The notes beneath the pieces were generated by a model, which was not told where the DNA came from, made no database searches, and saw nothing but the letters and a program-made list of their open reading frames with translations. This document shows, piece by piece, positions 1-20,308 of a stretch of 64,000 nt of DNA (within the stretch, counting starts at the first letter, position 1; each line of letters starts with the position of its first letter). The DNA lies in assembly GCA_950097015.1 (NCBI GenBank), contig CATNEN010000003.1, forward strand, positions 11,284,001 to 11,348,000. The letters run 5' to 3'. Made by a program: the position numbers and the translations under genes. The DNA comes from Macrostomum hystrix (lineage: Eukaryota > Animalia > Platyhelminthes).

Positions 1-210
1 TCTTAGAAATTCAACGTACCAGCAAATAATGTTTAACAAACTCAAAACATTTTTTAAAAATTCTGATAGAACTATATTCATAGAAGACTTACAGACTTTC
101 TCAGAAAAAAGCAAATAACTTATAACGAAAATGTTTAACTATAAGAATCCCTTGATAAGAATAAGCAAAAAATTAATTCTAAAGAGACTACCTTGCGTAG
201 CGTGGCGCAT

Positions 211-534
211 TTAGAATTTCGTGCAGCAGAACCCGCCTGTCAACAAACGGGGCACCCATCCCATTGTCAGTTTCAACATGCCAAGATCCACAGACAAGAT
301 CGATCCGATCAATTGAGGCTTTCGGACTCTCCAGTCGATCCGCCAACTCTCTTGCAGTCCGACGGGAATTTTCCTGTATCCTTTATCCTGTATCCTGTAA
401 CCTTCACCCCTTGAATCTGTGATTGTTAATGGAGAGATCGGACGGCCACGGTTGGCTGTGTCATCAGCAACGTCTGTTCGCCCATGACTGAACTCTTCAA
501 GCCAGCGATAGACAGCACTCTGCGAGATGGGACT
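211..534 (-). mobile_element. Degenerate Tc1/mariner (mariner-type) transposase fragment, N-terminal HTH region
   Basis: Stop-to-stop frame on the minus strand, absent from the ORF track, reads SQSAVYRWLEEFSHGRTDVADDTANRGRPIS...ILSVDLGMLKLTMGWVPRLLT. This matches the mariner motifs VYRW..F..GR....D..R.GRP and the WVPHEL-type linker. No start codon and no DD34D domain visible. Confidence 0.75.
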
Positions 535-1655
535 CTACGTGGAATTCAGTCAGCTGGATTACGATTTCATTACCTCGCTTCCACAATTTCCACTGTGAGT
601 ACACGAACTGGCGTTGATCTTTTTGGACGAAACGCTAAACATTGAACGATCGCACAAGGGAAAAGGAAAAACTCTAAACTCGACAGCGGCATCTTGTCGA
701 GGCGTACACAATGTCGATATCCGCGATGTGCTTGCTGCCTTTGGTGCCACGGATATCTCTTGCGTCAGCTTGTGCTTCTTTTGATTCTGGTGCTCACGCT
801 TCTCTGCTTGTCTGTTGCCTTTTTCTGCTTCTGTTTTCTAATGCTTCGGCTCATTTTCTTCTGTCGCAAAATTTTCGTCTATGGACAAACTTGGGTTGGG
901 GCCTTGACTTGGTGTAATTCAACCCCTTACCCCTTGTTCTAATTTTAGCCATGAATTTTAAATGAATTGACATTTTTAATTGATTCAAAAAGCCTTTGAA
1001 CTTTTGAATGTTTATTTATCAGTGACGTCAGTTTCAGTAAATTTAGTTTTACTACTTAGCTGGTGCATCGAGCTTTCCCACTATTTTTGGGACACCCCTC
1101 GTAGCTAAAATACAAAAAAGCCACAAGTCCAACTATTTATTTATGAAGCTACGAGTACAAGCCCAAAAGAGAAGGAAACAATATTTTATTACGAGTATAA
1201 TACTCGTAGATTAGTATCAAATAACTCCTGTGTATTTGTGCAAACTTTTGGTTGATGTTTAAACGATCATAATAAACGTCATAACAAAGAGTTTAAAATC
1301 ATAACAAAGTGTGTTCTAAACCGTATAAAAACCGATATTTCGTAGAATCTTATTTTATCATATTTATAAACGTCTTGCGAGAAGGGCCCGAATAAATATA
1401 GAAACTTAGATAGTTATAGGTTTATATATTTCAGAACATTGTCTAAAACTGAAAATCGGAATTGTTATAGATTAAAAATTTAATAGTACGAGCGTACATA
1501 ATATTTCAGCATATCGTTACTTGGTGGTCCTAGCCTCTCGCCAAATCTTGTAACTGAAGCAAGCTTATAACTTTTTTTTAACGCTGATAATATATAAATA
1601 TCCAGTTAAGAGTATTTTTATTATCGCTTAACAGAGTGGCGGTAGAGACTGAAAG

Positions 1656-2854
1656 TCAGACGGAGTCGCATAGAATATGCAGCTGCTGAAAATCGTTCAA
1701 ACCGAACGCTTTCGTACTCAATCCGTAGCACATCATGCTACCCTTGAGACAACCTGAGTCTAAACTCGAGTAACCCAGATTTAAACTCTCAAACAGACTC
1801 GGAGAGAACACAACGGTCTGGTGGTAGGCATGGAACACCGCGCCGACGGAGCCATTGATGAAGAAGTGCTGATGAGCCGTTTCGTTGAAAGCGAAACCAA
1901 CTGAAACATCTCGCTGAAGTCCATCAACGGGCAAGTTTGCAGGTGACAGCGAGAACAGTCCCGCTTCGTTGCTGTTAAGGTTGAATACGGCTCCGTTGTA
2001 GAAGTGGTCGTCTTTCTTGGCGAATGTATTGCCACCACCGCCGTCGCGCTGCATGAACCTGTGGTAGAACTGAAATCTAAAGCGTTTTGATGAATATTTT
2101 TATCAATCATTCTTGCTTGATACTATCGAAAAGCAACTTGACCGAATTTCAAGCTTTTTTTCTCACCCAAAACTAAAGGCATGCCTGACTCGAGTGAAGG
2201 CTGAAAACTGCTTGCCTAAGCCAAGCACTTCAGCGAATCCAGGAGTCTCAGTGCGCAGGTATGAGGCCGTGTCACCCCTGAACAGGGCTCCAGCGGCATT
2301 GATTGTGATGTTGTGAGCCGTGAGGCAGAACAGTCTCGGGTTGACCTCATTGACCAGACCGCTCCGAGAGAACTTGTAGAACATCTTCATCTGCAGCTGG
2401 CTGAACACGGGCTTGGCCACATCTGAAATGCGTGCGTGAATGCTCAGCTTGGTGACTGAGTGACTCCAATGCACTGATGGGATTGGCATGCAGCCAGTGC
2501 AGCCAGAGTGACAGCTCAGCTGTGCAACTCACCGCAGTCTCCACACAGCACATCGGTGTACTTGTAAGAGTCGCAGTCACCGGCAGTCCACTGAGCGAGC
2601 TCGGAACACGCGTCTCCGAGGTAGCACTTGTTGTTGGGCTGGTCAAAGTGGAACGCGTTGCATCGGGGCTGCTGACTGCAGACAGCGGCGCACTGCAGCC
2701 TGCTGGCCAGCCTCTGAGCCTGCAGGGAGGCGGCTGCAGTGGGGCAGCTTCTGACTTTGACAGCCGAGAAATACGGCAGCATTCTAGCGCAGGAGTTTAG
2801 CGTGAAAATATTCAGCAGCAGAAGAATGCTCAGAATCCCATCGTTAAGTGCCAT
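1656..2854 (-). CDS. Secreted PAN/Apple + ConA-like (LamG/pentraxin-type) domain protein, copy 1 (~332 aa); exons 2854-2533, 2422-2167, 2076-1656
   Basis: Hydrophobic leader, PAN motif CAAVCSQQPRCNAFHFDQPNNKCYL, and GT-AG introns (2532-2423, 2166-2077) that join the three ORFs in frame. The C-terminal region has F.G...SYL, HFFING, LNLG and LKGSMMCYGLSTKAF...DFQQL, resembling Laminin_G_3/pentraxin folds (domain call by pattern only). Confidence 0.85.
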
Positions 2855-4060
2855 ATTAGAAACTTTGGTGTCCTGGACAGACGCTATAACTTCAAAAGCA
2901 CGTTAATAGTTAGTTATTCAGTATTATTACCTTCAGCGATTTCGCTGTTTTACATGACTTTGTGACGGCTTGTTATTGGCTGACCAATCAATAATTGATC
3001 GCAAGAACTCATAACACGGATTCACTTTTACCCTGGAGCCGAGATCTGATTTTTTCAGCAGTTAGTTGAATAATTTTTTGGACTCGCATTTTTATTACTT
3101 CATGCGTTTTTGCTCTTCCAACTGAAAATGAATGGGTTTTAGAAAATAACATTTGAATGAGCACTGACATACAGAGACACATATTCATGAAAAAGTCTCA
3201 CAAAGCCACTGTCTATACTTGTCGTGGTCCAATTAATTTATCATATTTTACCGTATATTAGCAAGCGAATCGAATCAAGAATCAAGAATATTAAACTAAG
3301 TTTAAAGCTGACTAGAGGCACAAAATATATTTACACATTGAGTTGACTTTAAGTTTAAAAGCAAATCATTTCTTTACTAACATGTGATATTGTTAGTCGT
3401 ATTGGACCATTGTCACAAACAGAGTCATTTTCTTGTGTCTCCAATGTAGCATCAATAGAAAAAGTTGTGAAATTTTCTTAAGCCATCTTAATTATTTTTA
3501 CTTTTTTATTGAACACAATCACTTCATTTTAATTGAAGTCTAAGTTACTGCATGGTATTTTTTTTCTGAACGTCGATTCGTTTCCTTAGCGTTGTCGAAG
3601 CGTATTCGAAACGGGCGTTGAGAAAGTGTGAGGGCAAGGCAAAAAAGCTATTTAAATTTCTGAGCTCTATATAGAGTTGACTGCAGAATAATAATTTCCT
3701 GCTAATAGTAATTGATATGTCAGCAGATGAAAATTTACTTTAACCAAAGAGAGCCCGAAAACACACGTTAGTCGTTAAAAAAATTAACAAGTGTTCATAG
3801 CTAGGGTTTATGATGCTTAAATGTCACACGGTTCCGACACTCCTGTGTATCCTCCAAAAATTTGTTTATTAGTAAATCAAGTATGTAATTTAGTTTACTC
3901 TTAGCCGTGTCAATTTATTATGACTGAATAGGAAAATATATGGTCGTATACTCGTCACGGCAAATCATTTTTTGTTTTAGTTGACACAGTTTTCTCACTG
4001 AGGATCCCATGCAACGGTTTAAATTTTTCAATAGAAAAAATCTGTTTTTTCCTTCACGTG

Positions 4061-5256
4061 TCAGTCTTCATCGCAGAGTTGCTGTAGAAGCAGAAATTCA
4101 TTTAATGTCAGAACTTTTGAGCTGAAACCATAGCAGTACATGAGACCATTCAGACAGTTGGAATCTGTGGTCGACTGTCCCAGGTTCAGACAGTCAAACA
4201 GGTCCGGCGAGTACGTAGTTGACCCGATCGTGAACGAGTCGACAGCAACAATGGAGCGGTTCAAGTAGAAGTGCTGGTGCCTGGTCCCATCGAAGGCATA
4301 GCCAGCCGAGATCACTCGCGTCCGTCCGTCAGCAGGCAGGACTGTCGACGGTGAGTAAGAGTGAATAACTTCCCCGCTGCCGCTCCGAACCAACTTCATT
4401 GCGTCATAGATGCCGCCGTCTTTCTGAATGAATGAGTTCCCGAAACTGCTGTCGCACCTCAGAAACTTGTGATAATATTGCAGTCTGAAATAGGGCATGA
4501 AGAAGGTGCAAACAACAGCTGGTGGATGCAGAGAAGCTGAAACTGAATTATTCACGCACCCGGAGTCAAACACATGCCGGGCATTGACGAAAGCAGAATG
4601 AACCGCACTTTCTTTGAAAATATCTTTTAGCAGCAATTTCTCTAGAGTCAAGTAGGACGTACTGCGGCCCTTGAAGTGTGCGCCAGCTGCATCGACTGTC
4701 ACGTCAAAAGACTTAAGACAGAGCCTTCGTGAATTGACCTCATTGACCAGACCGCTCCGAGAGAACTTGTAGAACATCTTCATCTGCAGCTGGCTGAACA
4801 CGGGCTTGGCCACATCTGAAATGCGTGCGTGAATGCTCAGCTTGGTGACTGAGTGACTCCAATGCACTGATGGGATTGGCATGCAGCCTGTGCAGCCAGA
4901 GTGACAGCTCAGCTGTGCAACTCACCGCAGTCTCCACACAGCACATCGGTGTACTTGTAAGAGTCGCAGTCACCGGCAGTCCACTGAGCGAGCTCGGAAC
5001 ACGCATCTCCGAGGTAGCACTTGTTGTTGGGCTGGTCAAAGTGGAACGCGTTGCATCGGGGCTGCTGACTGCAGACAGCGGCGCACTGCAGCCTGCTGGC
5101 CAGCCTCTGAGGCAGCAGGGAGGCGGCTGCAGTGGGGCACTGCCTGCTGCTCTCGAATGACAGCTTGACGGCTGTAGCTGTGTAGCTCAGGCAAAGAAGT
5201 ACCAGTAGTCGTACCCTGAAGGCAGTATCGCATTGACAGTACTGACACAGCTTCAT
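4061..5256 (-). CDS. PAN/Apple + ConA-like protein, copy 2 (~336 aa); exons 5256-4926, 4815-4560, 4484-4061
   Basis: ATG at 5256 (the ORF-track start at 5328 is TTG). Same intron positions and phases as copy 1. Intron 2 (4559-4485, 75 bp) is in frame and stop-free. Confidence 0.85.
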
Positions 5257-5995
5257 GTTTGGTCTGGTTCTGTAAAATTTTCTGGTCGAATCTAGAGTAG
5301 CTGGCGTTGGCAAAGATACATGCTCCAAATATGTATATTCTTACCTCAACCCAAGGGAGAAGTCTGTCAATTCTCGAGAGGCCTTGTGCATAGCTTAGTG
5401 GCTGCATGATAGCCTCAAGAGCCGGCTTTCTCTCTGTCTCCAAAGTTTCTTCTAAAAGAGTGAAACGTGCACATTGCCCGTCCACAGAAGACTTGGGACT
5501 CAGGTTGATTGAGTGCGCTATTCTCATTGTTGAATTAGAAATCCAGAAGTGCTCTGGATATTTGTGAATTCTTTCATCTAAAATATACTCATTCTACAAA
5601 ATTCTCTGAAGATTTTAGAAGCTTTCAATCACTGAAGTGTTCTGAGTGCTACTTAACATTGCAAAGGCTGCTAGTTAGGAGTATCGACGAAGGATGAGCT
5701 TTGATCCTCTAAAAAACGTCCGGAGTTTTTTTAATCTTTCAAAGCTAATTAAAGAAATTTGTTTTACGTGGCTCTTCGGCTTGTCGTGGTTTTTGCGTCC
5801 AGATCTGAAGTCATTCGTTAAAAACTACATTGCCATTGACCAATGAATTTACAATCGTCACATCGTCCTAAGAATACTTTACTAAAACGTTAAGACCTCC
5901 GGCTCGTTTAAGGTACATAAGACTGGAGCTTTAGATTTCAGTAAATTAAAATATAAAGTAAAAGAAAGTTAGTTTGACAATGACAATAAAAACAA

Positions 5996-6296
5996 TTGCA
6001 GGATAATAATGGCTGTGGGCAATGGAACGCTTTTTGGTGACATTGAACCTTCAGGAGGCAATTCTGCCCATTTCGCTGACTCCTGAGCACACACGCACAC
6101 ATATACCGTGCGCACGCATACGCTCACACAGGTGTGTACATCTGCCCTGACTTTCTCATCGATAGGCAGTGTTCACTCTCACTGTGCATTGGAGGTTGGC
6201 CCCCCCCCAATATAATGTGGCCTCGCCGCGGAATCGAGCTCAGGGACCTTGGTGCGAGAGGCAAACGCGTTAGACCACACTGCCTGCCACTCACCC
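5996..6296 (-). mobile_element. tRNA-derived SINE family A, diverged copy
   Basis: Homologous to 22087-22437 and 32651-32995 (shared ctgcccatttcgctgactcctgagcacacacg...ggaccttggtgcgagaggcaaacgcg). Confidence 0.75.
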
Positions 6297-7257
6297 CTCG
6301 AAGTTCTACTTCAGTAAAACAAAAAAGGGGACGTTTATTTGATTACACTCGCATTGTGCTGCTCTCCGAGGCTTTGACGGACAGCGCTAGAGCGCATCTC
6401 TAGTGGTTGCTGAGGCCACCTGCAGTATAATACTGAGATAGCTCTCTGAGCACTGACTCAAACGCCCGATAGACAGATGCTCGATTCAGACCGTTCCATG
6501 GCCGCAGTTGTCCTGGCCTTAAGCCACAGTCTGTGGACAGATAATCGAAGCAAGAACTTTCACGTATTTGATTGTTGCGTCTTCAATATTAGAGAGCTGA
6601 GACAATAGCCTGACTATTGTACTTGAATGCTCGGTTGCACTTCTACAAAGTTTTCTGGCGCATGTCAATGTCCCACAAGTTCAAGAAGCATCCAAAGCAA
6701 AACTGTCCAGTGTTATTCCAGTGTTCGGGCTGTAGTGATACTATATTAGCTGTCAATAAAGTAGAGGTGAACCAACTAAGTGGAAAGTATGCATGACCGC
6801 GATAGAAACTAAAACACATTGTTAAAAACAAAAATAGAGCTCCTGAATGGAGAAAAAATCAATTAGTTCTATTATACTTATTTCATTATAATCGCCGTAT
6901 TTTATAGAAGAAAATATTTGAGTTTATTGATTACACCTGCCCCAAATTGGGCCAGATGAGCAGCCGACAACGCGTAATTGCGCGGCGCATTTTAAAGCTG
7001 TTAGGCTACAACCATTTAAGTCAGCGTTTAAAAATCTAACTTAATTTGATTTAATCGAGCTCAACTTAACAACAAAGAAAAACAAACATAAATAATGGAA
7101 AGTTTCTAATACTCTAAAAATACAATAGAATACAGTTAAAAATACAATATTCCAAAAATGTCTTAGGGAAAATTTAAGGCAAAAATATTTTCACATATTT
7201 AGTCTCTCAAATAGACTTCTCACGGACACAAACTGTATTTATTTTTTACGTCAGATT

Positions 7258-8459
7258 TCAGATTTCGTCACAGAGCTGCTGGATCTGCTCAAACTCGGTC
7301 TGGCTGAGCACTTTGGTGCTGAATGCGTAGCAGAACATGCGACCTTCCAGACAGTTGGCATCGATTCTTGGAATAGCTTGGCCAAGGTGCAGGCAGTCAA
7401 ACAGATTTGTGTTATAGGATGCACCTGCATTAAAAGGTGGGTCAGCCGAAACCATCGAGCCATTGGAGAAGAAGTGCTGGTTCGCTGTTCCGTTGAAGGA
7501 GAATCCCAAGGAGTTCGTCAGTCGACCGCTAGATGGCAGCACAGAGGGCGATGATAAAATAAGCCCAAACTCACTGGCTCCTTGCCTGAAGACGGCCGTG
7601 TTGTAAATCATTCTGTTTAACTTAAAGAACTGATGGCCAGGAATTCCAGAACCACAGGAAACGAAGTTGTGATAGAATTGTCGCCTGCGAAAAGAGACAG
7701 GATGAAATTAAGCCATAAAAAATGAAATCAATGGCTTTGGGATTTAAAAAACCGAGTCTGACCCAGTGCCGAAATTGTGGCTCGCACTGACGAAGGTGGA
7801 GAACTGGCTGCCATAATCAAGGTGCTTAGCAAAGCCGGGAGTCTCAGTGCGCAGGTATGAGCCCAGGTAGCCTTTGAACTGAGCTCCATTGCCATCTATG
7901 GTCACATTGTGAGCCGTGAGGCAGAACAGTCTCGGGTTGACCTCATTGACCAGACCGCTCCGAGAGAACTTGTAGAACATCTTCATCTGCAGCTGGCTGA
8001 ACACGGGCTTGGCCACATCTGAAATGCGTGCGTGAATGCTCAGCTTGGTGACTGAGTGACTCCAATGCACTGATGGGATTGGCATGCAGCCAGTGCAGCC
8101 AGAGTGACAGCTCAGCTGTGCAACTCACCGCAGTCTCCACACAGCACATCGGTGTACTTGTAAGAGTCGCAGTCACCGGCAGTCCACTGAGCGAGCTCGG
8201 AACACGCGTCTCCGAGGTAGCACTTGTTGTTGGGCTGGTCAAAGTGGAACGCGTTGCAGGTTCTCAGTTGACTGCAGACAGCGGCGCACTGCAGCCTGCT
8301 GGCCAGCCTCTGAGCCAGCAGAGAGGCGGCTGCAGTGGGGCACTGCCTGCTGCTCTCGAATGACAGCAGCTTGGCACCAGAAGCAGCTGCAGTCAAGCTG
8401 TGGCACAGCAGCATGAGCAGAATGAACCATGCCACGGCTGTGCAGTCTAGGTTAGCCAT
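7258..8459 (-). CDS. PAN/Apple + ConA-like protein, copy 3 (~337 aa); exons 8459-8129, 8018-7763, 7684-7258
   Basis: Leader MANLDCTAVAWFILLMLLCHS. GT-AG introns 8128-8019 and 7762-7685 restore one reading frame. Confidence 0.87.
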
Positions 8460-8596
8460 GTGAGCTTCAAGCTGGTAAAGTAATATAAGCTAGTAAAATC
8501 TTTCAAAGTCAGCTAAGTAACTTTTTCGGAGCTCTTCTTATGCTTCCTGACAGGGTGGATCGAGAAAAATGCAGCCGGTGTCAATCAGGCTACAAG

Positions 8597-8643
8597 CCAG
8601 AAGCAGCTGCAGTCAAGCTGTGGAATAGCAGTAAAAGTAGCAT
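8597..8643 (-). pseudogene. Orphan signal-peptide fragment of the PAN-ConA family (MLLLLLFHSLTAAASG)
   Basis: 27 bp at 8597-8623 are identical to 8377-8403 in copy 3 exon 1 and continue into a different hydrophobic leader. Nothing of the gene follows it. Confidence 0.7.
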
Positions 8644-9499
8644 GACGGAGAGCTTGCTAGCTCCTCTCAGACAGACAATAGGCTTTATCACTTGCCTGGG
8701 TCTGTTGCAACTTACAAGACTCTGTTTGCCTTGCATGGTTCACTTGCTTTTATGCATTTTGCTAAGAACCTGAAACAATTGATGTTTCGTTATTTGCTTC
8801 TGCCTGTCAGCTTAGGACAGCTTGGTGTCAGCTTGGTGTCAGCTTGGTGTCAGCTGTCACCATGGAGTCACACAAAACTCTGTCCTTGCGCTGCGTTCCT
8901 GCTCGTAGCCCAGTTGAGGCTCAGGCCTGAACTTGAGAGGGAACGAGACGAGTGGCCTGGTGGTTTTTTCCATTATAATTAAACAGTGCAAAAAAGTTCA
9001 AGAGTAGTTGGCAGAAATGTAGGATGAGCAAACACTCTGCGACTTGTCACCAAGGAAACGGGCATCCAAGGAAGAGAGGTACCGCGCAGCCAGTCTTCTC
9101 CGGTTCCTGAGTGTTAAGAACGTGCAGAATCGCTGCAGAAATTTTTTTACTGAAAGTCTTTGCCAATGCAGTTCTGTTGCAAACCGGATTTATCAATGCC
9201 AAGAAAGATTTGCTCCATGATCCTGTCGGCAGATACCTACTTGTCCACTTTATAGATTCGTCAATGGGAGGAGCAGAGAAATCACATGATCTACAGCAAG
9301 ACCAGCCACCAGCTAAGCGCATTTACTATTTTGACTACCAGAAACTGTTTGGAGAAGCCATGTCTGTATTTTCCTCTTCGCAGATTTATGCTATTCTTCA
9401 ACAGCAAAAGTGGAGCGCCGAGTGGAAAAGTAAATCAGGCAAGAGACAAATAGAGATGACGAGTTTAGTGCTGCCGGACGATATTTACCTTGATGGCAT

Positions 9500-9975
9500 G
9501 TTCGACTGCTTGCCGAGCGTTGAAGACATCGAGAGATCAATGGGCGAGCTGTCACGAGTGTCAATACCAGACGTCAAACGGATCATTACGTCAAAGAGAT
9601 GTTCGACTTCACGGCATCGACGCCGTCGTTAAACATTGACTTGATGACGACGGCTGAGCTGGAGTACGTTGACCGTGTGCTGCGATAGTTCTACGGCACG
9701 GCTCATAGGACAGACGGGGGATATTATATAGCTATATACCGCTACATGATGCCGGACAGGCAACTAAAGATCATCGAGGGCGATGCTTTCAGGGCGATGC
9801 TTTCTATGCTGCAAACGCGACTCTGAAGGCGTTGGCGCGGAAGTTTATCTTTGAGGGCGGTCGCGCGAAGCATTTCCAAGCTGTTAAACTGGAGGACATG
9901 CAAAAATTATCGCGATACTATGACAGGCAGTCTCCTACGGCTTTGCTGCACGAGGTTTATCTCAATGTTTTGGAA
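9500..9975 (+). mobile_element. Degenerate Crypton-like (DUF3504/ZMYM/KCTD1-type tyrosine recombinase family) fragment
   Basis: Reading through a stop and a 14 bp duplication frameshift gives ELEYVDRVLR*FYGTAHRTDGGYY...AIYRYM...LKIIEGDAF/YAANATLKALARKFIFEGGRAKHFQAVKLEDMQKLSRYYDRQSPTALLHEVYLNV. This resembles the Crypton N-terminal pattern L..FY...R..DG..Y...AI.R....II.D..F..AN..L. The catalytic YR part is not seen. Confidence 0.6.
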
Positions 9976-10315
9976 ACGCGCATCAGGCCGAGTAGCCAAG
10001 TAGATGATGGCATCGAGGCAGTCAAGCCTGAGTATAGACGATCAGATTGCCTAGCCGCTTGCGCGCAATCGAGGCTCTCCTGCTGACTATGCCGCTGAAG
10101 GATGACTATGGTAGCGTACTGACTCGCCTGAAGCGGGAGGTGGTGTTTCAGCAGAGCAACCAGCTACTGTTACAGGCCAGCGGTCTTGTCAAGCACGTTG
10201 AACAGCAGCATCGGGCGCTGAAGAGTCGATGAAATTTCCGCAAAATCTGGGTCGCGATGCCGATACTGCCGCCAGGACAGAAGACTTGAAGCGCTTTGAT
10301 TGACGGCCAGTCAAA

Positions 10316-10608
10316 GTGTCAAAAGATTCTGAGGATCTGAGGATGGTGTCAGAAGATTCTGAGGATCTGAGGATGGTGTCAGAAGATTCTGAGGATCTGA
10401 GGATAATGTCAGAAGATTCTGAGGATCTGAGGATAATGTCAGAAGATTCTGAGGATCTGAGGATAATGTCAGAAGATTCTGAGGATCTGAGGATAATGTC
10501 AGAAGATTCTGAGGATCTGAGGATCTGAGGATGGTGTCAGAAGATTCTGAGGATCTGAGGATCTGAGGATGGTGTCAGAAGATTCTGAGGATCTGAGGAT
10601 GGTGTCAA
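10316..10608. repeat. 30 bp minisatellite (GTGTCAGAAGATTCTGAGGATCTGAGGATG)n
   Basis: About 9 tandem units, directly visible. Confidence 0.95.
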
Positions 10609-11163
10609 AAGCAGATTTTTAAGGTTTTTGCTAATTTTTTTCATGTTTTCAAACTCGTATTATTCTTAGTAGTCATTTTAGTGACCAGAGAAAAAAGTTA
10701 AATTATTTCTTTATTTAGTAAATAAGCCAACCACAGTTAACCAATGACACTTTAACAGTCTAGTTTATTTTATTTTTAGAATTCAAAAAGTTCTAAACCA
10801 GATGGGTTTAGACTCTTATAAATTTATTGCTATAAAAAAGAAAACATTGAGATAAGTGGTAGCTAATATTGAGGTGATAAACAGTAAGACATTGATTGTT
10901 GGCTGTTTAAGCATCAGGGTCTAGGCCTCAGTTTTCCACTGAAGCTGTGATTTTTAGTCATCAGAAATGTAGTCAAGTTGAGTCCTTGAAAAATAGCTCG
11001 TGTAATCAATAGAAAAATATAAAGTGCAAAACTCAAAACTCATTCTCAAGTAACTTGCAGAAAAAATACAATTAATAACTAATAGTGAGCCGTAATCAAT
11101 TTCTCGCCTTGACAGCCATCTGACAGTCTGGCAGTTTGACAGTCAATACATTTTCGTCAGATT

Positions 11164-12366
11164 TCAGATTTCGTCACAGAGCTGCTGGATCTGCTCAAAC
11201 TCGGTCTGGCTGAGCACTTTGGTGCTGAATGCGTAGCAGAACATCCGGCCTTCCAGGCAGTGGGCATCGTTTCTTGGAAAAGCTTGGCCAAGGTGCAGGC
11301 AGTCAAAGAAACTTGTGTTATAGGATGCACCTGCATTAATAGGTGGGTCAGCCGAAACCATCGAGCCGTTGGAGAAGAAGTGCTGGTTCGTTGTTCCGTT
11401 GAAGGAGAATCCCAAGGAGTTCGTCAGTCGACCGCTGGATGGCAGCACAGAGGGTGATGACAGCATGAGCTGAAACTCACTGGCTCCTTGCTTGAAGACA
11501 GCTATGTTGTAAATCATTCTGTTAAACTTAAAGAACTGATGGCCAGGAGTTCCAGAACCACAGGAAACGAAATTGTGGTAGTATTGTCGCCTGCGAAAAG
11601 AGACAGGATGAAATTAGGCCATAAACAATTTAAATCAATGGCGTTGCGATTTAAAAAACAGAGGCTGACCCATTGCCGAAATTGTGGCTCGCACTGACGA
11701 AGGTGGAGAACTGGCTGCCATAATCAAGGTGCTTAGCAAAGCCGGGAGTCTCAGTGCGCAGGTATGAGCCCAGGTAGCCTTTGAACTGAGCTCCATTGCC
11801 ATCTATGGTCACATTGTGAGCCGTGAGGCAGAACAGTCTCGGGTTGACCTCATTGACCAGACCGCTCCGAGAGAACTTGTAGAACATCTTCATCTGCAGC
11901 TGGCTGAACACGGGCTTGGCCACATCTGAAATGCGTGCGTGAATGCTCAGCTTGGTGACTGAGTGACTCCAATGCACTGATGGGATTGGCATGCAGCCAG
12001 TGCAGCCAGAGTGACAGCTCAGCTGTGCAACTCACCGCAGTCTCCACACAGCACATCGGTGTACTTGTAAGAGTCGCAGTCACCGGCAGTCCACTGAGCG
12101 AGCTCGGAACACGCGTCTCCGAGGTAGCACTTGTTGTTGGGCTGGTCAAAGTGGAACGCGTTGCATCGGGGCTGCTGACTGCAGACAGCGGCGCACTGCA
12201 GCCTGCTGGCCAGCCTGTGAGCCAGCAGGGAGGCGGCTGCAGTGGGGCACTGCCTGCTGCTCTCGAATGACAGAAGCTTGACACCAGAAGCAGCTGTAGT
12301 GAAGCTGTGGCACAGCAGCATGAGCAGAATGAACCATGCCACGGCTGTGCAGTCTAGGTTAGCCAT
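11164..12366 (-). CDS. PAN/Apple + ConA-like protein, copy 4 (~337 aa); exons 12366-12036, 11925-11670, 11590-11164
   Basis: Closest paralogue of copy 3. GT-AG introns 12035-11926 and 11669-11591. Confidence 0.87.
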
Positions 12367-13390
12367 GTGAGCTTCAAGCTGGTAAAGTAATATAAGCTAG
12401 TAAAATCTTTCAAAGTCAGCTAAGTAACTTTTTCGGAGCTCTTATGCTTCTTATGCTTCCTGACAGGATGGATCGAGAAAGATGCAGCCGGTGTCAATCA
12501 GGCTACAAGCATTTTAATTTCACGGCACCGAATGCACCTAATATAGGCGACATTGTTAGCACGGCAAGTTAGTCTGCATTTGTTGGCGATTGTCGTGAAA
12601 TGGCTTTGCTATGGGGGACTCCAGTTTACACTGTCTCTGCTTGGCTGACGATTCCGTCGATGGCAAGTCTCTGAAACGCAAACATCATGACAATGGCGGC
12701 GTGTAAATGGAGTCAATTCCCGACTGCTTCCTGTTTGGGCTGAAACTGAATGCTGTTATTATCTTGCTTTCATTGCCCCAATCTCGCGCCCAGCTAGAGT
12801 TTGACTGACGGGCCAAACTCTCCGTTGTATCGAAAGATTTTGTAACGATCTCTGTGAGCTGGGGAATGACTTTGAAGCGGATGCACATTCATAGTCGATG
12901 AACACATCTATTTGCTCCGAAGCCAGCCGCTTAGAAACTTTTTTACCTGGAATAAATGCGACATGCAGAAAATCTAATATATTTAAAGTCCAACATGAGA
13001 AACATGTCTGCGTCGTGTTTTTTTAGAATTCGTGAGAACTATTTTTCCACATCAATGTTCTCATACCAGGCAGTTGAGGACCTGTTATAGTCTGGTTTGA
13101 ATATAGAATAGAAGTTGAATAGTCCTTTCTGTCCCTCTCACTTAAAAAACAGTCTAGCTTAACTGACAATGCTTCGATTTCAAGATAAGTCCAGTTAGCC
13201 TGTCATTATGGCATTTCTTAAGAACTTTTTAACATATTTTTCGAATCATTTCTTTGCTCTGTATTTTATTTTGTACCGAATAGTCACTAGGAGTAAAAAG
13301 CTGGGATGTCATTATACTGTTATTGTTAGGTATCCAATATATTTCTCAGAAAAACAACACTGAGAGCTTCTGATTTCACAAAGTCAACAG

Positions 13391-14618
13391 CTAGGCTTGT
13401 ACACAGAGTTGCTCCAACGTAGAAAACTCAGCTGAACTGAAGGCTTTCAAAGCCAAGCCGTAGCAAGCGATGCTGCCCAGCAGGCACTTGTCGCTGATGC
13501 TGTGGTAGCCGAGTCGAAGGCACTGGAACTCTGCGAGTGGCGCAGGATCCACACCGCCATCAAACTGACCGACTGCAGTCAGGGTTCCGTTGAAGAAGAA
13601 GCGACTCTGCTGGGTAGCAGAGTAGGTCATGCCCAAGGACAGAGTTCTGGATGTTCCTGAGATGCCAAAGAGCTTGTTTGAGACGGCTTTCAGATAGCCG
13701 AATGAACTGTGGCTGGAGGACCAGGCCGCGTAGTTGTACACGAACTCGGAGCTGCGACCAAATGTGTTCGATGGACTGCTGGTGTCGCCGGAGCAGACTT
13801 GGTAGCGATGGTAGATGCGGTTGCTGCAGTTGAGAATAGCGTATGCGTGTTTTAATTAACCTTCAAGCAAGGAAACTTAATGAATGACAAAATCAACAAT
13901 GAAAAACAATTGTACTACCTCAAGTCCAAGACTTCAGATATCAGCATATAGAATGAGTAGCTTCTACCATAGTCAAGGTATGCCTCGAATCCGGGAGTTG
14001 CAGTGCTCAGGTAAGAGCTCGGATTGCCCTTGAAGTGGGCACCTCTGGCATCTATGATCACATTGTGAGCCGTGAGGCAGAACAGTCTCGGGTTGACCTC
14101 ATTGACCAGACCGCTCCGAGAGAACTTGTAGAACATCTTCATCTGCAGCTGGCTGAACACGGGCTTGGCCACATCTGAAATGCGTGCGTGAATGCTCAGC
14201 TTGGTGACTGAGTGACTCCAATGCACTGATGGGATTGGCATGCAGCCAGTGCAGCCAGAGTGACAGCTCAGCTGTGCAACTCACCGCAGTCTCCACACAG
14301 CACATCGGTGTACTTGTAAGAGTCGCAGTCACCGGCAGTCCACTGAGCGAGCTCGGAACACGCGTCTCCGAGGTAGCACTTGTTGTTGGGCTGGTCAAAG
14401 TGGAACGCGTTGCATCGGGGCTGCTGACTGCAGACAGCGGCGCACTGCAGCCTGCTGGCCAGCCTCTGAGCCTGCAGAGAGGCGGCTGCAGTGGGGCAGC
14501 TTCGGACCTTGACAGCCGAGAAATACGGCAGCACTCGAACAGCGGTGGTGCCAGTCAGGCTATGCAAAAGCAGATGCCAGTTCAGGCTGAATATCGTAGA
14601 AAATCCTCTATACTTCAT
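13391..14618 (-). CDS. PAN/Apple + ConA-like protein, copy 5 (~340 aa); exons 14618-14285, 14174-13919, 13823-13391
   Basis: ATG at 14618. GT-AG introns 14284-14175 and 13918-13824 give a continuous frame ending ...FSSAEFSTLEQLCVQA. Confidence 0.85.
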
Positions 14619-15256
14619 GATTGGCAAGCTTTTTCAGTCTAATACAGGATTATAGAGCATCGCATTGAGCAACAATTGCTGTTTTATTTAAAATTTCCTA
14701 ACCCTCGTCGTTTAGCGTGTGGAATCTAGTATCAGAACAAATATCATTTGTAGAAATTATGGGCATTGGCAGCGAGAGCATTGTTCTTGGAAAGCAAACT
14801 TATGTGCCGTGTTTTTGCACGCGAAGCTTGAAATTCTGTTTGTTTTTGTTAGAATTGGAGTTGTCGCTCGATTGCCTCGAGCCAAAATCATTGCCTAGTT
14901 TCATCACTTTTCTAGGAAAAACCAGTAGTCCATTCAGGGATGAAAATCAACGAGTAGGCTCTATATGAAATCTGTACGCTGGTATAACTCTTTTGTAGCA
15001 ATGGAAGTATAATAAAAATGATTATCTGCTTAGCTTTATTCACGAAAACGGTTATATTGAGTAGCGCAGTTGTAGTGCTAGGATCTCGTACCGAAGTTTC
15101 CGAGCTCAAATCCGCAGCGAGTCCACATTCATTTTGAGGCATTTCGCGCATTTAGGGCCCCTTAAGGAACTCGCGTTGTACAGTGTTTGTCTGAGTTCGT
15201 ATCTGTGTGTGCATGTGTTCTTTTTCTGCAATACTCGTTATAGTTAAGGTATCGAA

Positions 15257-15605
15257 ATTAGTTCACTTCTGCTGGGGGGTATTAGTTCTCTGTTGCTGGG
15301 GTGGCATTAGTTCGTTGCAGCTTGGGGAATTAGTTCACTGTTGCTGGGGGCATTAGTTCTGTGTTGCTGGGGGACACTAGTTCTCTGTTGCTGGGGGGGC
15401 ATTAGTTCTGTGTTGCTGGGGGGCATTAGTTCTCTGTTGCTGGGGGGACATTAGTTCTCTGTTTTTGGGGCATTAGTTTACTGCTGCTGGGGGACATTAG
15501 TACACTTCTGCTGGGGGGACATTAGTTCTCTGTTGCTGGGGTATTAGTTCTCTGTTGCTGGGGTATTAGGTCTCTGTTGCTAGGGGTATTAGGTTTGTCT
15601 CTGTT
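15257..15605. repeat. ~23-25 bp degenerate minisatellite (ATTAGTTCTCTGTTGCTGGGGGGC)n
   Basis: Visible tandem units with variable G-runs. Confidence 0.9.
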
Positions 15606-16293
15606 ATAGTGGACAGGATTATGTTTGTGCCACCCAGAGGGGGGGGCTAAATGGGTAGTAACTATTCTAAAACTTTCAAGACCACAGAAAGATGCACTTA
15701 TAAAGCATCGCATGACGAAGGACACTTTCTGGGCTATGAAAACAGAGGAAAGCTTGTGACTACAAATTTATCTCTGGGAGAAAGTCATCAAGGAAGCAGT
15801 GACAATACCCATCGCATCAATGTCGACTTGGACCACCCAAATTCGTTTTTACCTCGCACTCTTTGGCGAGTGCCAATTGTACCAAGGCAAACAGAGAGCT
15901 TCGGTCCTAAAGTAAATATACAAAATAACACATCAATGCGAATTCGGCTGCAGAATTCAACCATTCAGATGCGTTCGACCTTGCAAACCCATACGATGCG
16001 GGTCTCAGGAAATCTCTCTCTCTTTTTTCCTTCTTTTCTTTAGGCCAACAGCTATAAGATTTTTCTTCTATTGAATCTTCTGGTTCAGGCCGAGTGGTCC
16101 TCGGTCAGAGTGGAAGTGGAATAGGAAATAAAGGAGAGAGACGCGTTGACTTAAGGTTCGTGTCAACTTATATCATTCATTTTCTGTCATGTTAAATGAG
16201 AATTTGTCGTTTAAGAGTAAGAGAATGAAGTGAAAAAAGGTCACGTTAATTGTGCTTCTGAGGTACAGCTCTACAGTGAGACACTTTTTTATC

Positions 16294-19271
16294 ATGTCAG
16301 AAAGTGGCGGAGACCCAGCAAAAATCCGCAAAGCCAAGTCACTTCTGTGCTTCTTGTTAGTTAGCATATCTGCCGGCATTGCCTACAATGCATCCTACGT
16401 TTTCCTGTCAAGCATGACAACAACTCTTGAACGACGCTTCGGATTCGATTCGGAGGACACCGGGCACATCATTGTGGCCAATGATATCGGCTTTGCGGCC
16501 ACCGTGACTCTAGTAAGTTTCTATGGCAACAGGGGGCACAGGCCGCGAGTACTCGGTCTGGGCGCCGTTGTTATGGGCCTGTCCACAGCCGCATACGCTC
16601 TGCCATACTTTGTCTATGGGCCTAAGTACTCGGACGCTGAAATCGCTCGCTACCTAACACTAACGGAGCAGCGAGCCTTGCAGAACTACAGTCAAGGCGC
16701 TGCCTCAACTATCGACGGAAGCGATTTACTCTGTCGCGTTGAATCAGCATCCGTACCGAACGAGCTCTTCAACAGATCCTCAGATTCAACACCATCTTTA
16801 ACGTCTACCACTCTGACATCAGAATCATCAGCTAGCAGTCAGGCCGACGCTCGCGATGTAGTTTTTGTCGTCTTCATGATAGTCGGCATAGTTCAAGGCG
16901 CAGCTTCAGCACCCTCCTGGTCAGTGCTTTTCACCATGGTCGAAGACTCGGCCACCGAGGCGCGCTCGCCAATCTACATCGGTCTGGTGATTACGGCTCG
17001 ATCGATTTCGCCCATGCTTGGCTACTATCTGGTTGGACAGTTTTTAGCGTTGCACGAGTCGCTTCAAGCGTCGGGTCTTCGCGAGTCCGACAGCCTTTGG
17101 ATCGGCAACTGGTGGCTGGGATTTCTCAGCCTGGGATTGATAACAAGCATCCTCGGTTTTCCCATGCTGCTATTTCCTCGCCAGCTGGAGGATCATATTC
17201 CTTGCTGCTCGGCAAGATCGGCTGCCAGTGTACAGAAGGATGTACAGGATGGCGACGAGGATCTCGAAGAGAATCTTCCACTGGAGGACGCGACGGCAAA
17301 CGTCGGGCGTCGTTTGAGTCGCCACAGATCGTGCGAATCTCAGCCAACCGGCTCCGGAAGGTGGGCGAAATTTCTTCACAGCCTGAGAGACCTGTCTCTG
17401 GCTGTAAAGCGCACAATGACCAACGCAATCCTCATGCTGGTCATGCTGTCTTGTGTGGTCAGCTTGCTGGGTTCGGGTCTCGAAGTTCTGTTTATTGTGA
17501 AGTATTACGAGAACTACTTCAATGTGCTGCCCTCGGCTGCAGGTCAATACGTTGGCATGACTTACGCCTTGCCAACGGCCTTAGCAACACTGGCTGGGGG
17601 CTACCTGGTATCTCGTCTGCGGCTGGACGTTGTCGGCATGATGCGTCTGATCTGCGGCATCTTCCTCGTCACTACTGTGCTCAATGCGCCCGCCTTCTTT
17701 ATGGACTGCCCATCGGAGAGGCTGAATCCGGCGACGTGAGTGCAACTTTCCAAGAATTTTGGATTGAAGTTTCTTTTGCTGAGAAAACAACTTTTACGAA
17801 TCTTTTACGCACAGAATCTTGGCTATCGCTGGCGACAATGTCTCAAGCGGTGGTTGCGCTTCAAACTGCGGCTGCGACCCCACTCTGGTTAATAATCTGC
17901 CCGTGTGCGGAGCTGATGGCAATTTCTACCTGTCTCCGTGTCACGCGGGTTGCACTGGAACAGTCGTTGGCGCCGCTGTTAATGAGACTGAATCAGTAAG
18001 AACACCTCGTAGAAAATTTTAGTCAAACTGGTGTTTTGATACTGTTAAAGGAATTCTTGGTAGCTAAATTGTTTATTTTGCTACTAAGGTCCCTGAACTC
18101 GATTGAAGCAATATTTAACTGATCTTCATTTGCATGCATGTATGATCGTTCAAGTGCGAATTAATTTAATTTTCTGACTTCAGGCCACAGAATCAAAGTT
18201 CAGCAACTGTCGGTGCTTGGAGAGCATGCAGTTGGACAATGCCTCTTCATCAAGCCCCGCTGTCAACACGGCTAGAGCAGGTGGCTGTCAGGGAGTCTGT
18301 AACATGGTTTACGCATTCTCAGTGCTGAAATTTATCGCTCACTTTGTCGATGGACTGTCCTATGTGTCTTGGTTTCTGCTAGTGATGAGGTAGGACTATT
18401 ATTACACTTTCTTTACGTAATAACATGAATTATTTCGTTATTTAAAAAAAGATAAAACACTTTGTTTTTTTGTTTTTTTAGAATCACAGACTCAAAAGAC
18501 GACGAAGCCATGGGTGTTGGAATAATTTCATTATTTTTTAGCTTGGCTGGTAAGTAGGATTATTACTGGCACATCTTTTGAGGACACTAGACCCTCAGCC
18601 AGCGAGGAGGCAATTCTGCCAGTTTGGCTGACTCCTGAGCACACACGCACACACAGATACTGTACGCAGGCACACGATCACACATGGGAGTGTACATGTG
18701 CCCAGAATTTCTCATTGTCATGCAGTGTACACTCTCATTGTAACTTCAATTTCTGTATCGTTTGATTTAAACAAAATAATCTACGTTAATTAAGCGACAA
18801 GAAACTTGCCAAAAAGATGAGCAACTTCTGAGTATAACGCTTTTTATTATATAGTTAAGTAAGCAAAAATTATAACGATTATAATGGTAAAAGACCTTAT
18901 AAATTCCGCAGAATTATAAAATATGTAAACTTTTTAAACCTAAAAGTTCTGCTATTTGTGTTACAGCATCGATCATGGGCGGGTTCTGTGGCAGAATCTA
19001 TGAGTCTGCTTGCCTAGCGACTACCAGCGGGTCGGCAGGCGAGCGCAACTGCCTGCTGTACGACCGTCAGAGACTTCGAATCCTGTTCAACGGAATCCCG
19101 ATGCTAGCTAGGGTGCCCTACTTTGCCCTGCTGCTAGCTGCCTATCTGCTAATTAAAAGACGTTTCGGATTTAGCAGCATTGAAGTGGTGCAACAGCAGT
19201 CGAACTTGGATGAAAATGAAGGCATTGAGAATGCTGATAACTGTGCCAGTAACAATGAAGCTGCAGTATAG
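16294..19271 (+). CDS. SLCO: Organic anion transporting polypeptide (OATP/SLCO family), ~733 aa; exons 16294-17735, 17815-17995, 18184-18389, 18482-18549, 18967-19271
   Basis: Motifs TTLERRF, VSFYG...HRPR..G.G, the OATP signature D..WIGNWWLGF and FPRQL. Kazal-like loop C..NC.C......PVCGADG..YLSPCHAGC and the terminal C...G..NC..YD. All four GT-AG junctions keep phase. Confidence 0.93.
18565..18742 (-). mobile_element. SINE family A, partial copy in SLCO intron 4
   Basis: Matches the body of 22087-22280. Confidence 0.7.
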
Positions 19272-19494: not shown

Positions 19495-19690
19495 TTACAA
19501 CTGCCCCAATCGGGCCAGATGTGCAGCCGACAGCACAGTCGCAGCTAGTACCCATTTAACAGCTGGGTGAACTGAAGCAATGCAGGGTTAAGTGCCTTGC
19601 TAAAGGACACAAATTGTTCTAGTCGAATCAGGAATCGAACCCCCGAACTTCAATGAGTCCGACGCTCCTTACTGCAAGGCAACATAAAAC
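19495..19690 (-). mobile_element. tRNA-derived SINE family B with CORE/Meta-like central block
   Basis: The minus strand has B box GGTTCGATTCC (19641-19631) followed by TGTGTCCTTTAGCAAGGCACTTAACC...CACCCAGCTGTTAAATGGGTAC, resembling conserved central domains of metazoan SINEs. A remnant of its tail lies at ~6930-7020. Confidence 0.6.
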
Positions 19691-19718
19691 CTCATATAAA
19701 TATAATCCAGTAACTGAC

Positions 19719-20308
19719 GGAAGGAAGGAAGGAAGGAAGGAAGGAAGGAAGGAAGGAAGGAAGGAAGGAAGGAAGGAAGGAAGGAAGGAAGGAAGGAAGG
19801 AAGGAAGGAAGAAAGAAAGGAAGGAAGGAAGAAAGAAAGGGAGGAAGGAAGGAAGGAGGGAAGGAAGGAAGGAAGGAAGGAAGGAAGGAAGGAAGGAAGG
19901 AAGGAAGGAAGGAAGAAAGGAAGGAAGGAAGGAAGGAAGAAAGAAAGGGAGGAAGGAAGGAAGGAGGGAAGGAAGGAAGGAAGGAAGGAAGGAAGGAAGG
20001 AAGGAAGGAGGGAAGGAAGGAAGGAAGGAAGGAAGGAAGGAAGGAAGGAAGGAAGGAAGGAAGGAAGAAAGGAAGGAAGGAAGGAAGGAAGGAAGGAAGG
20101 AAGGAAGGAAGGGGGGAAGGAAGGAAGGAAGGAAGGAAGGAAGGAAGGAAGGAAGGAAGGAAGGAAGAAAGAAAGGGAGGAAGGAAGGAAGGAGGGAAGG
20201 AAGGAAGGAAGGAAGGAAGGAAGGAAGGAAGGAAGGAAGGAAGGAAGGAAGGAAGAAAGGAAGGAAGGAAGGAAGGAAGGAAGGAAGGAAGGAAGGAAGG
20301 AAGGAAGG
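19719..20308. repeat. (GGAA)n microsatellite, ~590 bp
   Basis: Direct reading. Confidence 0.98.

Follow-up and report, generated by a model that had tools for sequence, protein, structure and literature searches.

Probable recurrent interlocus gene conversion of an exon–intron core shared by diverged PAN-domain paralogues in the flatworm Macrostomum hystrix

Introduction

Several multigene families combine a conserved N-terminal module or intron with a divergent functional domain, among them the conopeptides, the snake-venom phospholipases A2 (PLA2) and the major histocompatibility complex (MHC) class I genes with their homogenized introns. In the chicken immunoglobulin (Ig) pseudo-V system, the lamprey variable lymphocyte receptors (VLR) and antigenic variation, an expressed copy is varied somatically or clonally from silent donors. 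The mosaic divergence produced by interlocus gene conversion is well described, and a review brings together both models and cases (PMC3924837). Segmental concerted evolution is likewise set out for the GOT1 paralogues of Tigriopus (PMC3728101) and for HMA4 in Arabidopsis halleri (bioRxiv 10.1101/2025.10.29.685298). Here we describe a stretch of 64,000 nucleotides from the genome of Macrostomum hystrix (Platyhelminthes; assembly GCA_950097015.1, contig CATNEN010000003.1, hereafter C3, positions 11,284,001 to 11,348,000), called the window throughout. Its left 15 kb hold five tandem genes on the minus strand, each of three exons, which share a nearly identical core of 406 bp within otherwise strongly diverged sequence.

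The genes are referred to as c1 to c5 in order of their window coordinates; positions are those of the window unless a contig is named. The locus resembles the cases of segmental concerted evolution in tandem paralogues in that the duplicates are old, a homogenized tract with sharp edges lies beside old divergence, silent sites are included, and the effect is confined to linked copies. The probable explanation, at roughly 0.88, is that interlocus (non-allelic) gene conversion has recurred on one contig, with at least 11 linked family members involved. An initial annotation of the window, made from its sequence, had already proposed conversion among the five tandem genes, and its individual claims are taken up below with the results that bear on them.

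Results

Identity of the core among the window genes

The core begins with the last 214 nt of exon 1, which hold the whole PAN/apple domain from its first cysteine, continues through all of intron 1 and ends 82 nt into exon 2. It occupies positions 2341–2746 (−) in c1, 4734–5139 (−) in c2, 7937–8342 (−) in c3, 11844–12249 (−) in c4 and 14093–14498 (−) in c5. Ungapped comparison against c1 counted four differences in c2, ten in c3, two in c4 and one in c5. Across the five copies, the 110-nt intron 1 carries one substitution, which is among the four differences of c2. Eight of the ten differences of c3 are crowded into 10 nt at 8259–8268 (−), where this copy encodes QLRTC instead of QQPRC. Outside the cores, ungapped identity is about 25–60% or the sequences cannot be aligned at all, except between c3 and c4.

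The five near-identical blocks, the lone intron substitution in c2 and the small cluster in c3 had all been reported in the initial annotation and were recovered here, as was its range of 75–95 bp for intron 2 (75–95 nt in our gene models). Its further statement that leaders and intergenic DNA are unalignable except between c3 and c4 is accurate for the wider flanks, but not for the sequence adjoining the core. Upstream, 24–45 nt are still common to the copies in two versions, type A (LPYFSAVKVRS) in c1 and c5 and type B (KLSFESSRQ) in c2, c3 and c4. Downstream, at least 30 nt more are common to all window copies but c2, in which high identity ends exactly at the 3′ edge of the core.

The core contains approximately 174 silent sites, namely the 110 intron positions and about 64 synonymous sites, of which 0–6 differ in most pairs and up to about 7 in pairs with c3. 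The proportion of synonymous sites that differ (pS) is 0–0.10 in the core, and intron 1 differs at 0–2 of 110 sites. In exon 3, every pair outside a young subgroup shows a pS of 0.63–0.91 and a protein identity of 24–44%. The young subgroup consists of c3, c4 and a distal copy described below (d15.21), with exon-3 synonymous divergence (dS) of 0.16–0.28 and a ratio of nonsynonymous to synonymous divergence (dN/dS) of about 0.3; to judge from its exon-3 dS of 0.16, c4 is a recent tandem duplicate of c3. Because so few of the silent sites of the core differ, against a synonymous difference of 63–91% in exon 3, the identity of the core is not a matter of chance. The same contrast supports the earlier argument that selection on the protein cannot explain identical silent sites and an identical intron.

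Age of the paralogues and discordance between domains

In a tree of exon 3 built with proteins of M. lignano, c5 is sister to the M. lignano protein P0004 (97/91) and c2 is sister to P0001 (91/92); pairing with M. lignano proteins is likewise seen for family members on contigs C11 and C15. Since exon 3 of c5 and of c2 group with separate M. lignano proteins, the paralogues are older than the split from that species. The approximately unbiased (AU) test rejected monophyly of the nine core-sharing genes, a group set beforehand by core sharing (p = 0.0002). In the protein sequence of the core, c2 shares 97% identity with c1 and c5 and only 77.5% with its M. lignano orthologue P0001, and core proteins within the M. 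hystrix genome are 97–100% identical. Clustering of cores by species and of exon 3 by orthologue, which the initial annotation had named as a test of conversion, was thus found at the protein level. Age, and not fast evolution, accounts for the apparent hypervariability of the C-terminal domain.

Copies of the core elsewhere in the genome

The block was searched against the whole genome (220,453,370 bases in 42 contigs). Core sequence with 98–100% identity was detected at five more sites on C3, at 10.146, 10.857, 10.860, 10.864 and 11.211 Mb; these copies lie up to 1.15 Mb from the window, and four of the five are on the opposite strand. A further copy, d15.21, is located at 15.21 Mb of C3, 3.9 Mb away, and is 92% identical. 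Pairwise core divergence ranges from 0.2 to 4.6% and does not clearly rise or fall with distance over these 1.15 Mb, and the leader and the C-terminal domain are particular to each core-carrying copy. The number of participating copies, given as five in the initial annotation, was therefore an underestimate: at least 11 copies over 1.15 Mb, partly at 3.9–5 Mb, are involved.

Two of the distal copies are pseudogenes. In d10.864, deletions of 8 and 44 nt frameshift the PAN exon, and exon 3 is frameshifted as well; in d11.21, stops interrupt exon 3 and the leader has been replaced by a minisatellite. Their cores are 98–99% identical, only 1 and 5 bases away from c1. Because these two disrupted copies keep the core, participation in the exchange would be independent of whether a copy is functional.

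Family members were also found on contigs C15, C11, C9, C7 and C26. They show only 35–62% identity in the PAN domain, and their exon 3 is 28–39% identical to that of c1, a divergence similar to that among the C3 copies. All homogenized copies are on C3. Since the members on other contigs diverge in the PAN domain, the core is not intrinsically invariant and is free to vary.

Two members on C7, at 12.49 and 12.99 Mb, are inverted relative to each other, 0.5 Mb apart and 99.4% identical over 1,237 bp. This pair may have arisen by an inverted segmental duplication of recent date or by a conversion over a large tract.

At its 5′ end, the core contains four occurrences of the palindrome CTGCAG in a stretch of only 64 nt (2683–2746 in c1, and the equivalent position in every core). 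The 3.4-kb locus holds six occurrences against 0.9 expected, which may simply reflect LQ/AA codons. The 44-nt deletion of the pseudogene d10.864 sits between two of these palindromes.

Boundaries and mosaic structure of the exchanged segments

The ends of the shared tracts vary from pair to pair. At the 3′ side, they fall 0, 30, 63–68, 85, 102–109, 170–212 or 470 nt beyond the core edge, and at the 5′ side 0, 24–31, 35–37, 43 or 61 nt beyond it. Within the core, four-gamete violations occur between sites 21/26, 21/72 and 72/233; at site 233, all five window copies have C, and among the distal copies three have G and two have A.

One distal copy, d10.860, matches the core at offsets 1–260 and then diverges at the point where a high-copy element of about 250 nt, resembling a short interspersed nuclear element (SINE), sits in its intron 1 (C3:10860972–10861221). 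Heavy divergence marks the remainder of intron 1 and the first part of exon 2, and the conversion tract evidently stops at the heterology created by the element. More than 3,800 first-look candidates for this element were counted genome-wide, many of them 90–91% identical over a 163-nt core. A second SINE-like copy lies about 1 kb upstream of the d10.860 gene.

The copy d15.21 is partial in the opposite sense. Compared with c4, d15.21 differs at 1 of 101 sites in intron 1 and at 0 of 82 in proximal exon 2; elsewhere, their divergence is highest in intron 2, at about 32%, and amounts to 10.7% for the PAN exon and 9.9% for exon 3. Because d15.21 is near-identical to c4 only in intron 1 and proximal exon 2, a copy 3.9 Mb away appears to have exchanged the 3′ half of the core. 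The eight-substitution patch of c3 agrees with d15.21 and with the RL.TC state of M. lignano and other paralogues. Given this distribution of RL.TC, QQPRC would be the derived state, now spread over nine copies, and the c3 patch would be either an ancestral island left unconverted or a micro-tract.

A proposed course of the conversion

The silent-site contrast, the discordance between domains, the pseudogenes, the unhomogenized paralogues on other contigs and the mosaic ends all strongly support the central claim of the initial annotation, that localized interlocus gene conversion homogenizes the constant module while the C-terminal domain escapes it. On this probable reading, a segment of about 400–480 bp is copied again and again between paralogues, erasing replacement, synonymous and intron differences alike; it covers the entire PAN domain, intron 1 with its 110 nt, and 27 codons at the start of the second domain. 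Two exon stretches, one for the PAN domain and one for the first strand of the lectin-like domain, may originally have been kept pairable by purifying selection, and the short intron between them would have been carried along in heteroduplex tracts spanning both. Once identical, the segment would stay a preferred substrate and form a self-sustaining island of identity. Flanks diverged by more than 30–50%, or interrupted by insertions, would block extension of the tracts and leave edges that are sharp but staggered. The multiple overlapping events suggest that the exchange is ongoing.

Several points weigh against this interpretation. The clustering of cores by species is seen at the protein level only, and a protein tree of the PAN domain alone was too short to resolve and had long branches, so that identities were used instead. 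Pilon short-read polishing of the assembly could in principle understate small differences between near-identical copies. The base composition of the core is equivocal: GC content is 54.5% in intron 1 versus 29–42% in intron 2, and GC content at third codon positions (GC3) is 0.85–0.89 in proximal versus 0.45–0.66 in distal exon 2, values that are consistent with GC-biased conversion but not specific to it. Unconverted paralogues overlap with this range (intron GC 0.30–0.59, GC3 0.51–0.85), and some of them have GC-rich PAN exons and introns. Finally, a few recent bursts of conversion would look much like an exchange that is still going on.

Alternative explanations

The initial annotation had also suggested that the core acts as a recombination hub for swapping leaders and variable domains, an idea that finds weak and indirect support in the sequence. 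Gene c1 carries the type-A leader junction, otherwise present in c5, d10.860 and P0004, the M. lignano orthologue of c5, and its exon 3 falls within the type-B clade. The mismatch could stem from a crossover within the core or from a 5′ tract of greater length. In its full form, the proposal would make the island a homology “joint” that reassorts leaders or promoters and C-terminal domains among at least 11 genes, with the pseudogenes as additional donors. If true, this would amount to germline, and conceivably somatic, combinatorial diversification of a secreted recognition protein family; we consider it improbable.

Local homogenization of the PAN region may not be limited to C3. Two neighbors on C9 (at about 1.003 and 1.005 Mb), which belong to a different subfamily, are 97% alike over 264 bp of the leader and PAN exon and about 70% alike elsewhere. 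In the M. lignano protein P0003 (UniRef A0A1I8JIC5), which consists of two tandem units, 25–28 of 30 residues per window are identical in the PAN domain, versus 5–15 of 30 in the jelly roll. PAN-localized homogenization thus seems to recur independently in the C9 pair and, at the protein level, in P0003, and the same island pattern may exist in M. lignano.

Another possibility is that one recent wave, for example a burst from a single donor or unequal crossing-over, replaced the segment in all copies at once. In favor of such an event, all the cores have diverged very little, and distance, up to 1.15 Mb, has no clear effect on how much. However, the staggered ends, the two 5′ junction types, the four-gamete violations, the c3 patch and the half-converted copies d15.21 and d10.860 require several events with different endpoints, which makes a single wave very improbable.

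Could the identity have been introduced during assembly? The M. hystrix assembly (about 220 Mb in 42 contigs) was generated with canu from PacBio reads of a highly inbred line and polished with Arrow and with Pilon using Illumina reads (PMC10468722). Cores that truly differ might have been made alike by short-read polishing with multi-mapped reads, the effect conceded above, or by collapse of the copies. Yet variants private to one copy or limited to a subset were kept (four in c2, one in c4, the c3 patch and site 233), and reads from flanks diverged by 30–50% would not cross-map, so that polishing could hide at most about a percent or a few. A 406-bp repeat in unique flanks is trivially bridged by long reads, and the tract ends fall at biological features, namely the SINE, the exon structure and subfamily relations. 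We regard an artefact of this kind as extremely unlikely.

Equally little weight can be given to purifying selection at the nucleotide level on an element within the cassette, such as an intronic enhancer, a noncoding RNA or a splicing element. An intron as invariant as the exons, and block edges that are alike in many copies, would suit such an element. Against it, an Rfam search of window positions 1–16000 gave no match at E ≤ 1, the RNA fold of intron 1 is no better than that of shuffled sequences (z = −0.31), and neither the antisense open reading frame (ORF; 2477–2797, +) nor an alternative-frame ORF running through the intron (2350–2646, −) has a Pfam match. Moreover, the pseudogenes retain the core, whereas its sequence is missing from family members on other contigs and from the 5′ half of d15.21. 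The gene d10.860 functions with a SINE in its intron and an unrelated 3′ half of that intron, and 22% of the core residues are different in the M. lignano orthologue.

Spread of the cassette by a Helitron or other transposon was ruled out, as the cassette lies in frame at the homologous position in every paralogue and the DNA search matches family members only.

The encoded protein family

The product of exon 1 consists of a hydrophobic leader and an entire PAN/apple domain (Pfam PF00024). For c1, the match of exon 1 to Pfam PAN_1 reaches 24.2 bits against a cut-off of 21.4 (E = 3e-5); the PAN scores of the M. lignano proteins P0001 and P0006 are slightly under the cut-off. Exons 2 and 3 have no Pfam match. 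A structure was predicted with AlphaFold for the full-length M. lignano relative P0001, with exon-wise translations from M. hystrix supplied as alignment rows. The C-terminal domain of this model has predicted local distance difference test (pLDDT) values of mostly 84–96. A Foldseek search with the domain returned jelly rolls of the lectin type (E about 3e-8, 10–15% identity), including the carbohydrate-binding module CBM40 (template modeling score 0.66, normalized to the target) and the lectin-like subdomain of clostridial receptor-binding domains. Exons 2 and 3 together may encode a jelly roll of the concanavalin A (ConA)-like lectin/LamG type, a generic resemblance at the level of the fold only.

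A HMMER scan of 1.84 billion representatives yielded 13 proteins, of which the named ones are all from M. lignano, and word-indexed protein searches returned M. lignano proteins only. The family may accordingly be described as putatively secreted proteins with a PAN/apple domain and a predicted ConA-like jelly roll, apparently restricted to Macrostomum. A literature search found no paper joining “Macrostomum” and “apple domain”, and nothing on gene conversion in this family.

Gene models and neighboring features of the window

The five genes share one layout: intron 1 of 110 nt in phase 1, exon 2 of 256 nt, intron 2 of 75–95 nt in phase 2, and exon 3 of about 420–430 nt. Splice sites were inferred from the reading frame, the GT/AG rule and the M. 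lignano protein P0001. Each exon was analyzed on its own, by reference.

Gene c1 extends over 1656–2854 (−), with exon 1 (signal-like leader and PAN domain) at 2533–2854, intron 1 (GT..AG, phase 1) at 2423–2532, exon 2 at 2167–2422, intron 2 (90 nt, phase 2) at 2077–2166, and exon 3, including the stop, at 1656–2076. Gene c2 (4061–5256, −) consists of exon 1 at 4926–5256, intron 1 at 4816–4925, exon 2 at 4560–4815, intron 2 (75 nt) at 4485–4559 and exon 3 at 4061–4484. For c3 (7258–8459, −), the corresponding positions are 8129–8459, 8019–8128, 7763–8018, 7685–7762 and 7258–7684, and for c4 (11164–12366, −) they are 12036–12366, 11926–12035, 11670–11925, 11591–11669 and 11164–11590. In c5 (13391–14618, −), exon 1 lies at 14285–14618, intron 1 at 14175–14284, exon 2 at 13919–14174, intron 2 at 13824–13918 and exon 3 at 13391–13823.

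In intron 2 of c2, the acceptor was found by script; the donor (GG|GTGCGT) and the coordinates of exon 2 and intron 2 were set by eye from the alignment. This intron (4485–4559, −), 75 nt long, is in frame and free of stops, which accounts for an ORF of 273 aa across exons 2 and 3 of the gene; its retention would add 25 residues without truncating the protein.

Minisatellites lie between or beside the genes at 10287–10632, 15252–15537 and 19652–19996; one has a 30-nt unit (“SEDSEDLRI” in one frame), one a unit of about 24–25 nt and one an 8/12-nt unit. Minisatellites also flank other family members, upstream of d10.857 and downstream of d10.864, besides the one that replaces the leader of d11.21. 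A 64-nt direct repeat (97%) is present upstream of c3 and c4 (8377–8690 and 12447–12510). Beyond the gene cluster, a long ORF of 495 aa at 16252–17739 (+) strongly matches OATP/SLCO transporters (Pfam OATP, E = 3.7e-79), a sign of an animal genome.

Discussion

The process seen at this locus is known already, and the case is clear without being exceptional; the family it affects is undescribed and restricted to Macrostomum. As an instance of concerted evolution below the level of the gene, it is unusually clean: an intron is homogenized along with its exons, pseudogenes are involved, one tract is limited by a SINE, and the exchange extends beyond a megabase and includes inverted copies. These properties make it useful for measuring the tract length, the reach and the homology needs of ectopic conversion in a flatworm. 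The locus also calls for caution, since patterns of a constant core beside a hypervariable domain in the M. hystrix genome can reflect old divergence combined with local copying rather than rapid adaptive diversification. Orthology calls and phylogenies of this Macrostomum-specific secreted family would likewise be affected by conversion.

Set against the tandem-paralogue cases, the M. hystrix family differs in the scale and the unit of exchange. The participants number at least 11 and are spread over 1.15 Mb, partly at 3.9–5 Mb, in both orientations and with two pseudogenes among them; and the unit is a fixed sub-genic module with a complete intron, in a flatworm-specific family not previously described.

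The conopeptides, snake-venom PLA2 and MHC class I genes offer a second comparison. With these, M. hystrix shares a secreted multigene family with a constant 5′ module and intron next to a divergent domain. In contrast to them, its C-terminal domain gives no sign of fast evolution: dN/dS is about 0.3 in the young subgroup, and dS is saturated elsewhere. With the programmed conversion systems, such as the chicken Ig pseudo-V genes and the lamprey VLR, the only parallel is the presence of pseudogenes in the family.

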